This document shows positions 25,840-34,800 of a DNA stretch of 64,000 bases, piece after piece. The stretch covers positions 12,090,001 to 12,154,000 of the forward strand of contig OZ116708.1 in NCBI GenBank assembly GCA_964199315.1, given 5' to 3'. Source of the stretch: Orbicella franksi (lineage: Eukaryota). Made by a program: the position numbers and the translations under genes. The notes under the pieces are model-generated. The model made no database searches and was not told the DNA's origin. It was given only the letters and a program-made list of their open reading frames with translations. The stretch's first letter is position 1, and every line of letters starts with the position of its first letter.

Positions 25840-28800
25840 CTGCAAAACCCAATTTGTCATTTAGTTACGAAACTTCTACGATGAATTGTGTTTAGTTATG
25901 TTTTTGTATACCTAACTATTGAACTTATGAGAGTTGTCGCTCCTTTAAAACCTTGCACGCCTTGTTTTCTTTAAGGTAAGGTATTTCTTTTCTTAAATGT
26001 TTCCCTACATAAGAACGCTACTACTTTCCTAGATTTCAAGGTAATTCTTTTGCATATCGTGAGATATATGACGTTCCATTCTGCACTGGACAAAAACAAA
26101 TAGGGTGTTGGTGAGGCTAAACTTTCAAGGGTCAAAGTTGTCTTTCGGGACTAAGACAGTTTTGAGAGCTAATAATTATAAGAATGAACCAATCAGATCG
26201 CTTCCTTTCTGTCCTACATAATATTGTTTAGGTAGTCTTTTGAAACCTCTTTAGAGTTGCCTTTTGCCTCTTTGTCAAAACGAGTCTCCGTGCGAAACCA
26301 TTCATTTGGAAATGCGTTCCGCCAACATGTTCATTTTCATGCAAATCAAACTCATTTTCGTATGAAGGGTTTTGCAAGAAGACTCGTTTTGAAACAGAGG
26401 CACAAGGTAACTCGGACATGACCTAATACAACATATTCAGGATCGTACTGGGAGAATATAAGTCTTCCGTTTACCTTCTGTACAGACGTCGCTGCACTCG
26501 ATCCGTACTGGCAAGACTAAGGGCTGATATTCTCAGTACAGCCCTGACGATTGGTTTATAACTCAAATTTGGTCTTTGCTTGATATGATAACTCACCGTG
26601 GCTGATTTCTTGTTTTTTGGTTTACCAAGATCAACTTGAACCATGAATTGTTGTTCTTCATCGTCAGAAACATCACAATTCTCGTCATAAGCTACATTGA
26701 GGTAGTGTTTCTCTGAGCGACAGATGTCCTTGACAGACCTGTCTCTCTGGAGTATAGATTCTTCACTATCCATTCGTGTCATTACCGCTCTTTGTTGAAA
26801 TGAGTGGTGGAAATTCGTAGGTTTGTTTCGCCTAGAGGGAAAACAACGCAGGTAATTGCTCTATTTTGTTGAAAATACAGTCGAACCCCTATCAAGCGGC
26901 AACCCTTGGGAAAATGGGAGGTGGCTGCTCAATAGGAGATCGTTGGGAGTTAGGATGGGGCTTGGTAGAAACTTCAATTATACATATGCAAACTTGCTTT
27001 AAGGCAACATAAAAAAGAATGAGGTGAAGGTAATAATACTCGTGTGCCTAAATTTTTTTAATCGATGATCGCTCTCTACTTCGGACTCTTATCTGTCATC
27101 GCCTTTTCCAAAACAAAGTTAATTTACACGCATCAAATTTTGGGTGGCCCTTTTATAGGATTAACGACAATAGGACAACCAAAGGTTGCCGCGGCAACTC
27201 CATTAACTCCACCAATGAGATGCAAAACTTGAAAAGAATCACGATTTGGTCACGTGCGTTTTCCCACGCTTGGCGTAGGTCACGTGCTTACACTTTGACC
27301 AGGGCCTGATGCGCGTAAACAAGTTGGAAAGCCACGAGAGCTAGAGGGGAACAGCGAGTTCAACTTCCTATGTTACCCAGGCTATTAACGTGTCATAATT
27401 CTTACCCTTTTTTGGCAACAAAAGCAGCGGCAGCCACGCAGACGATGACAACAAAGAGGCCAATCGTCAAACCTACGATTAAACCAGTCTTTGACGACGG
27501 CTTAGCTGTAAAACCACGGGAAAAATGAAAATTAGTACTAAAACCTCCAAAGTAAATATTGTCTATAGTCACTTAAGGACCTGAATTGAGGTAGTAACAC
27601 ACTATACTAAAATACTGGTGTAAGGCAAGTACGGGCATAGCAGAATAAATGGGAATTGCAGGAAAAATACGAGTGTTTTCTTCAATTCCCAACTTCTTCC
27701 AAGTAACTTATTGTAAGTGTTTTTGTTGTTGTTGTTGTTGTTTATGTATTTTAATAAAACACGTTATTTTAACCAAATAGGTTTGGAGAGCATGGAACAT
27801 CTATCTGTACAACAGGCATGTCATATTCACTGCTGATTCACTTTTCGTCGTACAAAACCATCCTCAAACCGTTGGAAAGTTCATAGATACGCCTGGAGAC
27901 AACACAGCCACGGTACAACTGATGATTGAGCTTGCCTTAACTGTTTGAATGAATATATTATTATACAAAATCAAATTAATAATTACCTGTCTGTGGTTCT
28001 GTGTAACCTGCAAAAATAACAAGAAAATACCGTTTGAGTATCAGACCATTCCAAGAAATGGTTGTCGAGGGCAAAGCTCATGGAACGAAAGAGAAACCTT
28101 AATACTTCTATAGCAATGCTTTCAACAAGCACGAGACTGCGAAGCCATGATAACTGAGCAGCGGTTTCGCGACTAATGTGACTCGTCAGTCCAGGGTAAG
28201 GGATTCCGGTCTATAGGACAACTTAGAGAACGTTTTCATCTCTCTAAGCTCGATCTTCCATCATCCGTAGCTTCTTAAACACTTGCCAAGCCAAAAGACA
28301 CTTATTTCACGTGAACAAGATCCAGAGCTCTTCTGACTAAATTAGCTCGTAAATCCATATACTTTGGGGCGACACAGACCTAGTTTTTGTCTGCCTTTTT
28401 TTAAAAGCGAAAAATACTTACTGGTTGAAGCACTGTCCACTTTGAAGCCATACTGCTCTAAATCCTCGGCTTCTCCACTGTTGATCATTTCAACAACTTT
28501 ACCGGCCGTCAAATCACTTCCAGATTCACTGTCTCGAGCAAATAATGTTAACTTGACCCTGTAGAGGGAACGTAACACCGCTTAGCCAGAGTTGGAGAAA
28601 ACACAAAATCTCCTCAGTAAACGCCACATATCTAATAAAGTGTTATTGTGAGAATTTGACGATCTCTGTGACAATGAGCTTAGCGGCGTGAAGACCCCAT
28701 AAAAAGGAGTATCGCTGATATTCCGTGTCTCTGAGACGCGGTGTAAGGATATTTTTAGAATCACTTTTCTACTTGTAAGTAGGGTTTTTCAGGCCTAAAA

Positions 28801-31800: not shown

Positions 31801-34800
31801 ATAACACTTCTTGCTTACTTTAAACTCTTTGATGTCAAATACATGACATGTTCCTTCTCGATTCGGTTTTGTCACAGACAGCGTCATAGAAACCAGTGCC
31901 TTTTTGCCTAAAAACGCACAAAAAGAAAAACAATCAATGAAATTAATTTAAATGCTGTTTGGGCGGTCAGTGTTCATGATTAAAACCTAGGGCAGGACTG
32001 CATACGACCGCAAAGAAACAGATGTGACTTATTTTTGGTTTGGAAACTTATACAGATTTCAGAATTTGAACATGATTAGTCAGAGCAGTTTTAATCAACC
32101 GAGTCTTTCTCCTTCCCATTAATCTCTACCGAAAATCATCAGCGAGACTAGCGTCACTTGATCTCACTTGGCAAGAAACGATGCATTAACAAATAAGCAT
32201 TTTATTCTGCTGCTCACCAAACACTTTTAGGGAAGCCGAGTTGGATCTCACTGTACCAGCCACATTGGTAGCTTCACACAAATACCAAGCTTCGTCCTGA
32301 GCGAGGGCATCTTTCAGAACAAGCTCCGGCACAAAAGGATTTATATCGTCTGTTTCCACCATCGGGATGTTGTCCTTGTACCATTTAAATGTCGGCAGCG
32401 GGTCTCCAGATGCCCTGCACGCCAGTGTCACCTCACCACCGAGCTCCACACTACTGTTACTTGGGTGAGTCGCGATTTTTGGTGGATCTATAACGAGAGA
32501 CAAGAGTAAAACCGCTAAGTACCGTGAGATCCGATGCGTTGATCTTTACACGCCATACGGACCTACATTGGTTTGTAACACGCGGATACTTCACTGTAAA
32601 TCACTGTCAGTACATTGTTAAGTAAGCAAGAGTTGAGAATGAACAAAGTATTGACTTTATTATGTACTTCCAAATTCTCTGAACGAACACAACTGTAAAG
32701 GTAGAGTGAAAAGAGAATTAGGGGTTTGATGTTAGGGGAGGGGGTTAAAAGAGATAATAAATGATTGATTAATTGTTGACTTAACTAAATAATTGACAGA
32801 CTGACTGACTGACTGATTCGTTCGATCTAATGAAGACGCAAGCGCCACAAGAAGTCTCTTCTCACCATTCACTGTCATGTAAGCCACGCTAGACTGTAAC
32901 AAACCAGCTGAACTTGAAGCCAGACAAGAGTAGCCACCCTGGTGTTCCTCGGTCACGTGTTCCATGACGTAATCACCGAAATCATTCCAGTTGGAGACAA
33001 AGCGACCGTCTTTCATCCAGCGATATTGAGGTTTCGTGTTACCCTTGGCAGAACATTTCAGCTGTAAAATCAAGTACACAATTAACACATTTGCCCATGA
33101 AAATTGGCAAACATTTAAGTTAATCAAAGCTCTCACTTGATATTTGTCGCCCACAAGATGCGTTGCTCCTCTCGGAAATTCCACGAAATCACACAAAGTG
33201 TCGGCCGTTATTAAACCATCTTCAGTGATGTTAAACACCATCGCCTCACAAGTAATCCTGAAAACAGAAAAAAGAGTACAAGGAATGATATTAATAGCAT
33301 GCTATGAACGGATTTACCTAACTTGTTAACATCCCTGTTACCACCCTATTCAGGTCACGTGATGATTCATTTGGGAGGTAACATGCAATCAGTTGCACAA
33401 TAGGCGATTTGCATGGTGGCGTCATTTGACTACAACTGCGAGAACCCTTTACTTTTTTTTCTGTTTCTTGTGTTAATTAGGACAATAAAGGATGAAGATT
33501 AGAAATAGGGATCTGTACGAGACTTCATATTCTTAACTACCTATTTAAAGCTGAGAGTAAAAGGTAGAAAGACTGGATGCCTAAAGGAGGGAGAGAGGAT
33601 AGAGTGAAGAAAAGAAAGAGTTAGGGAGGGAGGGAGGGAGGGAGGGAGGGAGGGAGGGAGGGAGGGAGGGAGGGGGAAGGTAAGGGATAAGGAGAGAAGG
33701 ACGAAGGAGACGTGTACTTTTTGATACGTGTATCATGTTGGTAAAAAAAAAGAGCATGATGTCATGCCCTAGGAAAGAAATAAAGTACAGGGTGGTAATG
33801 TCAATGACTGTTTACTGCTTCTGAAACTTCAAAATCACAAAGAAAGACAAAAGCAATTTCTCTGCATACCTTGATGCGATTATGACGTCAATCGAGCTGT
33901 TCAGACTTGGAGTTCCTAAGTCGTAAGCTTGAACAGTCACTTTCCACTTTTTCGCAACCTGAAATCAGAGTAAACGGAATTCATTAACGCGAGAACTCTC
34001 ACACTACAAATGTTCTATAAGAAGGTCAAGCTAGTAAGCACTGTCACGCTGGGTCACGCTAGTTTTACAAAACGTCTTCTTTGTTTGCAAATCAGTACCT
34101 TAAACACATTTGATGAGTTTCCTTCATTTTGTTAGAATTTTCAATTCATAACATTAAAAAAAATTTTAAAAGACCTTTAACTCGAAATTATGAAAATCCT
34201 CCAATGTCAGTAGCCCATCACTAGTGATGGGCTCCCGACAATGTTTAGTCACGCAATTATAATTAATAACGCTATTACCAAACCTTAAACAGAAAATTCC
34301 TCACCTCAGTCTGTCCGAGAAGTCGGAATTTCACGATCCCGCCCGAGCCTAGATCGTCATCGATCGCTGTAACTCGGCCGATGTCGGTGTCGTTGAGACC
34401 ATCGAGCTCGAATTCATACGAAGGAAACTTGAAGCGAGGAGGGTTATCGTTTTCATCGGTTACTATAAGGTTGACGATAGCAGTGGAAGCTAACTTGTCC
34501 TCGGATCCTCCCTCGGCTGTTAAGAAACAAACAAACAATGTCACTAATTAATTTCATCTGTTAGGGTCTCTCTTCTCGTCAGAGGCCTCATTGTTGCTGC
34601 TTTGACCCAGTAGGCTGGTAGTTCGGAGGCTGGGGAGAGGAAATAATGGAAGCACACGGGGAACGCCCGGAAGGGGAGAGAGAGCCTCTCCCACTTTCCA
34701 TCATCCCTCTCCCAATTCACTGCCCCCTACCCTAGGGAGCCTCTGCGGAGGAGATAGCGTTTTGGTGGTAACGACTAATGAATCGATCTATACGATCGAG

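Follow-up and report, generated by a model that had tools for sequence, protein, structure and literature searches.

A conserved candidate convertase site close to the membrane in a coral Hedgling, a giant cadherin with a Hedgehog signalling domain

Cleavage by furin converts the giant cadherin FAT1 into a non-covalent heterodimer (PMC3953070). SEA-like juxtamembrane domains serve as proteolytic switches in Notch, PCDH15, CDHR2 and dystroglycan, and the two chains of Notch are held together until force exposes a second site (PMC6586460). The membrane-adjacent domains of PCDH15 (MAD12) and CDH23 also act as proteolytic switches in the SNAPS assay (PMC6586460; bioRxiv 10.1101/460097). KIAA1549 carries a minimal furin site, RMWR, in a membrane-proximal SEA-like domain, and retention of its two chains has been proposed (PMC13570299). 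Here we describe a candidate proprotein-convertase site in a Hedgling gene of the coral Orbicella franksi. The gene lies on the minus strand of a 64,000-nucleotide (nt) stretch of contig OZ116708.1 (assembly GCA_964199315.1, positions 12,090,001 to 12,154,000), which we call the window; all coordinates below are positions within it.

Hedgling is defined by an N-terminal Hedgehog signalling domain followed directly by a VWA domain, cadherin repeats and one transmembrane (TM) segment, with no Hint domain (PMC4054682). A Pfam scan of exon open reading frames (ORFs), combined with a splicing script, gave the order HH_signal, VWA, cadherins, two Ig exons, EGF units, TM and SH2 on the minus strand (Table 1). 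The scan, which covered part of the ORFs, returned no Hint match. Judged by this predicted domain order, which matches the published architecture (PMC4054682), the gene is a coral Hedgling.

Between the EGF modules and the single TM exon of this type I cadherin, and so placed extracellularly, exon D encodes the basic cluster RRIRR. An earlier note on this DNA had read GRRIRR|T as a furin-type motif. The motif is indeed there, at 29375-29355, and it fits R-x-[K/R]-R with Arg at both P1 and P4. Gly is encoded at 29375-29373 and Thr at 29357-29355; the cut is expected after the last Arg, before the Thr. Convertases are represented in the same genome, where 17 matches to the P domain P_proprotein (PF01483) pass the curated cut-off.

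On its own the motif is no rarity in this gene, so the case for the site rests on its conservation, which the earlier note had named as a check. Searching 1.8 billion representative proteins with exon D by phmmer, we recovered five exon-sized ORFs and nothing related beyond them; more orthologues came from a profile search and a metagenome scan. Orthologous exons were rebuilt from fetched contigs; their splice sites are canonical throughout, and their introns lie at conserved positions. We compared 18 distinct exon-D sequences from orthologues, 42-93% identical to the window, and an R-x-x-R stands at one and the same place in 17 of them. The variants are RRIRR (three sequences), RRLRR (two), RRARR, RRSRR, GRVRR, RRFRK, RRRR (three), RRKR (three), RKTR, RKYR and one loss. 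Every one of the 17 site-bearing sequences has Arg and never Lys at P1 and P4; Lys is found at other positions only. The loop around R-x-x-R varies among orthologues in both residues and length, and the Arg codons of the site change synonymously between species (AGA, AGG, CGA, CGC, CGG, CGT). Such codon turnover points to purifying selection on the residue. We conclude from the aligned sequences that conservation of the basic site exceeds chance.

What kind of structure holds the site? Exons C and D together encode what we call the middle module: a strand, a helix, the basic loop, a beta hairpin, a second helix and two likely disulfides. AlphaFold2 (AF2) modelled isolated exon D, with the 18-sequence alignment, at a mean predicted local distance difference test (pLDDT) score of 67. 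Residues 1-12 of exon D, which include the site, fell below 50. After the site came strands at 21-27 (TVRVIRY) and 32-37 (KVHFVL) and a helix at 47-60, all at pLDDT ~63-82, and the Pro/Thr-rich end was modelled as coil. Isolated exon C gave a mean pLDDT of 53, with a helix at 77-90 at modest confidence. The earlier note had put the motif in a loop of an alpha/beta segment. Of its elements, the TVRVIRY and KVHFVL strands, the exon-D helix and the exon-C helix are borne out by these models; LEIAMVL was not reliably modelled and so received no clear answer. The loop placement stands to the extent that AF2 of single exons leaves a low-confidence segment between helix and beta hairpin.

In the orthologue alignments the four Cys and the TPxPPTT strap of exon D are invariant or nearly so, there are no indels from the helix to exon E, and the spacing from the basic cluster to the DYGAC strand is nearly fixed. 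Neither exon D nor exon E has a paralogue in the genome (~497 Mb), where exon D is single copy. Spliced or intron-less copies of the module were likewise not found: representative proteins, 90% clusters, encoding contigs and JGI metagenome contigs gave genomic exon fragments only. At the C/D and D/E junctions no intron is both in frame and stop-free. Profile searches of the PDB, the ESM Atlas and fragment fold searches returned no matches for pieces of the module. The Pro/Thr-rich strap after the last Cys (29119-29200) deserves separate mention. It is nearly invariant and free of indels down to 42% identity, which is unusual for a linker; perhaps it lies packed against the module or bears O-glycans.

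Several observations concern the site and its surroundings in their own right. An N-glycosylation sequon (NSS, NVT, NMS or NET) lies 6-11 residues ahead of the basic site in six of the nine orthologues with a rebuilt exon C/D junction (29376-29390 / 30577-30590 in the window). In the most divergent orthologue, L007, two basic clusters follow one another: the end of exon C has RRRK (1161-1175), the start of exon D RRKR (1572-1595). A second full furin-type motif, RVKR, is found inside the HH_signal exon of the window (~55680-55691, minus strand; ..GSRVKRQW..), and cadherin exons contain further ones, RSRR (~43757) and RERR (~36320). Position 29384, the first base of exon D, reads C and not T in about half of the RNA reads of run X23, and the joints 29383|30576 and 29384|30577 are equally supported. 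The variant is probably an allele; it would turn the first codon, AGT (Ser), into GGT (Gly), nine residues ahead of the cut.

The earlier note had further likened the segment before the EGFs and the segment before the TM to two halves of one SEA/ferredoxin-like fold. The first of these, S1, is a strand-helix-strand segment of 51 residues spliced from exons A and B (ALVSM..EITGFS); the second is exon E. With Pfam SEA (PF01390), exons A, B, C and E had no match at an E limit of 1; at a limit of 10, exon E, spliced S1 and exon D (16 orthologues) had none either. Divergent SEA-like domains, the heterodimerization domain (HD) of Notch for example, are reported to have been identified from structure and not from sequence (PMC6586460). 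We built a SEA reference profile from nine genuine SEA domains of the same genome, aligned, and compared it with our segments by hhalign in global mode. Spliced S1 aligned over 51 of 51 residues, collinearly with SEA strand 1, helix 1 and strand 2, at a score of 16.2. Against the SEA N-terminal half, S1 scored 12.6-17.5 in five of six orthologues and 1.5 in the sixth; 173 decoys, each a 51-residue stretch from real domains of the window, had a mean of 3.0 and a maximum of 9.1. The end of S1, EITGFS, aligned to the SEA strand preceding the G|S cleavage turn, where one coral SEA reads IEITGFSDGS. A joint S1+E profile scored 14.5 against SEA (shuffles, 3.2 +/- 2.0; reversed, 5.2). We regard the resemblance of S1 to the SEA N-terminal half as suggestive only.

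S1 has no autoproteolysis motif of the G|S-V-V-V type. All nine genuine coral SEA domains have GS[VI] at the cleavage point; S1 ends TGFS-APKRC and runs into EGF1. Two other arrangements were tried and rejected. S1 combined with the middle module's second strand and helix stayed at shuffle or decoy level against the SEA profile, and an internal duplication, with S1 (KKALVSM..VFDIK) set against the start of the middle module, was not significant (hhalign P ~0.1). S1 also contains a conserved Cys in its first loop (GTCHVF, 31845-31847, minus strand) and is followed by a seventh Cys just before EGF1 (KRC, 31653-31655, minus strand); both are invariant in orthologues, which suggests a disulfide stapling the S1 half-domain.

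Some of these comparisons speak against pairing S1 with E. Exon E shows no signal against the SEA C-terminal half, where it scores at decoy level. The middle module alone scores 3.0 against SEA, which is shuffle level. The S1 signal itself comes from a small home-made profile of nine sequences used in global mode, with P-values that are not calibrated. A three-chain complex prediction with exons A, B and E as separate chains, in which the alignments went unused, gave 0.12 against a mark of 0.34 and weighs neither way. We propose only tentatively, and rate as just short of the better bet, that a single split SEA-like domain is made up of S1 and E and that the EGFs and the middle module are inserted at the SEA self-cleavage hairpin. 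The nested arrangement is plausible but unproven.

How might the site be used? We lean slightly toward RRIRR as a convertase maturation site whose product would be a non-covalent heterodimer, as in FAT1, Notch and KIAA1549. A furin-type proprotein convertase would cut the RRIRR loop in the late secretory pathway. The cut would fall between the first helix and the hairpin of the small middle module; should S1 and E pair, it would also lie between the halves of a second domain. The N-terminal chain would then run from Hedge through VWA, the cadherins, Ig, S1 and the EGFs as far as the first strand and helix of the middle module, and the C-terminal chain from the hairpin and the helix after it through the strap, E and the TM segment to SH2. 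Because the site would sit inside a folded module, and perhaps also between the halves of a split domain, the products should stay joined non-covalently. The furin cut would prime the receptor; the Hedge ectodomain would come free only after something more, such as force, unfolding or a second protease, on the pattern of FAT1, Notch S1, SEA mucins and KIAA1549. It is unlikely, on this analysis, that the furin cut alone sheds the Hedge ectodomain. The earlier note had presented the site as a route to shedding, and this appears to be the weaker half of its reading, since cleavage in a folded module would give a held heterodimer.

A number of points count against this proposal. Cleavage and heterodimer retention are both inferred from sequence- and RNA-level data. 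R-x-[KR]-R occurs four times in the ~4265 exon-ORF residues of the Hedgling gene. Two species retain only a minimal R-x-x-R (RKTR, RKYR). In the JGI metagenome contig L015 (664-927; 74% identity) all four Arg are replaced (TSFPG; SVTGTSFPGANV); the remainder of its exon D and its exon E look intact, and it comes from the same metagenome as the site-bearing L017. The site must hence be dispensable in at least one lineage or paralogue. The low pLDDT at the site, moreover, derives from isolated exon D and not from the whole domain.

Could a convertase site exist without nesting? The middle module and exon E would then make up one SEA-like or ferredoxin-like juxtamembrane domain, in which the long strap leads to the final strand and an extra helix-strand, and S1 would be a separate small unit on the Ig domain or the EGFs. 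The elements from LEIAMVL to VKLTLFA do follow the order strand-helix-strand-strand-helix-strand, as in SEA; the first strand-helix-strand of the middle module plus E scores 11.4 against SEA, with shuffles at 3.5 +/- 2.3; and other cadherins have membrane-adjacent ferredoxin-like domains (PMC6586460; bioRxiv 10.1101/460097). S1+E scores higher than this combination, however, S1 alone gives the clearest SEA-like signal, and the middle module by itself does not rise above its shuffles. The strap, 30 residues without an indel between the helix and the last strand, would be unusually long for one compact domain, and the S1 half-domain would be left without a partner. We judge this tandem arrangement distinctly unlikely.

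Other explanations dispense with cleavage or with function altogether. Hedgehog-family proteins use basic motifs in matrix binding. The association of Shh with matrix is discussed in PMC8052667. The cluster in Hedgling might similarly go uncut and serve as a glycosaminoglycan-binding or other charge patch on the ectodomain, of the X-B-B-X-B-B type; RRIRR, KSRKTR and KARKYR all fit loose heparin-binding patterns. Such patches, however, tolerate Lys/Arg exchange and shifts of position, whereas P1 and P4 here are invariably Arg wherever the site is present and the spacing to the DYGAC strand scarcely moves. The cluster also lies in a low-confidence loop within the module and not on a folded surface, and we hold a charge patch to be improbable. 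A neutral, lineage-limited site without a role, flanked by linkers and not by folded modules, would accommodate the L015 locus, which lost the site without other visible damage, the repeated occurrence of the motif in the gene and a module that matches no family or structure. Yet the site is kept down to 42% exon identity through synonymous codon turnover, and the invariant Cys, hydrophobic and Pro positions, together with the lack of indels, indicate a module under constraint. This last explanation is, we think, very improbable.

Returning to the convertase-cut heterodimer, the fullest version that we can put forward joins it to the split SEA-like domain. A membrane-proximal SEA would be split at its self-cleavage hairpin by a ~235-residue insertion of three EGF-type units and a second alpha/beta module, and a convertase site would replace autoproteolysis. 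The result would be a doubly interlocked, Notch-like, force-sensitive receptor of two chains, whose opening would free the Hedge-cadherin ectodomain and perhaps the SH2 tail. Taken as a whole, this scheme is rather unlikely.

We know of no animal protein outside the true Hedgehogs, other than Hedgling, that has a Hedge domain. A conserved juxtamembrane convertase site would provide a concrete processing step for a Hedge protein without Hint-based release, and it would place Hedgling beside the two-chain, mechanically gated receptors of the FAT/Notch/SEA class. A split SEA, if true, would mean that domains had been inserted at the SEA cleavage hairpin, a rare event, and that a convertase site stood in place of autoproteolysis; it would also put a force-sensitive switch in a pre-bilaterian relative of Hedgehog. 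If cleavage is absent, what is left is a conserved basic loop with no assigned use. Among the papers listed as mentioning Hedgling, and on combining the name with furin, convertase, SEA or cleavage, we found none on proteolytic processing of the protein.

Table 1. Positions of the Hedgling features discussed, numbered within the window
Feature	Position	Strand	Evidence
Hedge (HH_signal) exon	55590-55964	-	Pfam E 2.3e-17
VWA	52964-53605	-	Pfam E 1.2e-28
Cadherin repeats (example, four repeats)	36959-38077	-	Pfam E 3.4e-70
Exon A; adjoins last Ig exon directly	31907-31819	-	GT-AG; RNA junctions 32217|31907 and 31819|31718; orthologue alignment
Exon A content: first strand, conserved Cys and helix start of S1	31907-31819	-	
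Exon B: remainder of S1, seventh Cys in KRC, then EGF1	31718-31517	-	Pfam EGF E 2.6e-7; RNA junction 31517|30869; orthologue alignment
Exon C: EGF2, four-Cys EGF-like piece, start of middle alpha/beta module (LEIAMVL, helix)	30869-30577	-	Weak Pfam EGF; RNA junction 30577|29384; orthologue alignment
Exon D: basic loop, beta hairpin (TVRVIRY / KVHFVL), helix, four invariant Cys, Pro/Thr-rich strap (TPxPPTT)	29384-29119	-	AF2; 18-sequence alignment
RRIRR, candidate proprotein-convertase site, nine residues into exon D	29372-29358	-	Direct reading
Exon E: strand-helix-strand pattern just before stalk; candidate C-terminal half of split SEA-like domain	28558-28422	-	RNA junction 29119|28558; orthologue alignment
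Micro-exon, 21 nt (SYTEPQT), lengthening the juxtamembrane stalk	28007-27987	-	RNA-seq; AG/GT flanks
TM exon	27505-27406	-	Splicing script; RNA-seq
SH2	25492-25860	-	Pfam E 4.1e-8

The gene model behind these positions agrees closely with the one in the earlier note. Exons A-E and the TM exon, as given by the GT-AG splicing script, have limits identical to its own, and the peptide strings that it quoted are all present in the spliced translation. Every junction from exon A to the TM exon was seen in poly-A RNA-seq reads (run X23) and in a 5322-nt transcript contig (run X12). The earlier model is missing one element: at the joint 27509|28420, between exon E and the TM exon, all spliced X23 reads and the X12 contig carry 15 extra letters, which led to the micro-exon at 28007-27987. 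The spliced tail has 369 residues, counted from where the last Ig domain ends to where the cytoplasmic tail begins. Over the last ~340 extracellular residues the order is Ig, S1, EGF1, EGF2, the four-Cys EGF-like piece, the middle module, the Pro/Thr strap, E, a ~20-residue stalk and TM.

Elsewhere in the window, three intronic stretches (29539-29737, 29937-30135 and 31131-31329) exceed the exons in RNA depth by tens to hundreds of times, and they show many loose ends and many joints on the opposite strand. They resemble copies of transcribed repeat elements that contain inverted repeats. A 173-residue ORF (20912-21433, minus strand) that lies downstream of Hedgling is C-type lectin-like by eye only (WIGL.., WNDHTCN).

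How does Hedgling compare with the receptors described at the outset? With canonical SEA domains (mucins, agrin, enterokinase; PF01390) the likeness is that S1 aligns collinearly with strand 1, helix 1 and strand 2 of the nine SEA domains from the coral genome and ends at the position of their G|S turn; the second half of SEA is strand-helix-strand, a pattern also seen in exon E, which adjoins the TM segment. Unlike them, Hedgling has no Pfam match and no GSVVV-type motif, has ~235 residues between its putative halves, and would use a convertase site instead of autoproteolysis. KIAA1549 is, like Hedgling, a type I membrane protein; its furin site lies in its most membrane-proximal predicted SEA-like domain, and its minimal R-x-x-R recalls that of some orthologues. 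The two proteins are nonetheless unrelated: the KIAA1549 ectodomain is mucin-like and O-mannosylated, and KIAA1549 is not reported to contain an inserted domain. PCDH15 (MAD12) and CDH23 share with Hedgling membership of the cadherin superfamily and have a ferredoxin-like (SEA-like) domain that follows the last repeat and precedes the membrane (PMC6586460; bioRxiv 10.1101/460097), though theirs is contiguous, without a furin loop or an EGF insertion.

In the negative regulatory region (NRR) of Notch, as in the Hedgling tail, EGF repeats are followed by a juxtamembrane alpha/beta domain, one loop of which holds a furin-type site. The Notch region differs in its Lin-12/Notch repeats (LNR), of which the Pfam scan found none in Hedgling, where only EGF-type and Ig units adjoin the module; moreover, the SEA-like fold of Hedgling is putative, and the position of its loop, after the first helix, comes from fragments only. 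Like Hedgling, FAT1 and Drosophila Fat, with their 'classical' processing, are giant cadherins whose EGF-type modules precede the TM segment. Hedgling departs from FAT1 in its Hedge-VWA head, its Ig domains and its SH2 tail, in the laminin-G domain, which was not seen within this stretch, and in a cleavage that is only predicted; the module around its site has no detectable sequence relation to FAT. Furin-processed giant cadherins and SEA-like switches are thus already known as kinds, and a split SEA with a convertase site in its insertion, although unproven, would be a new variation on them.

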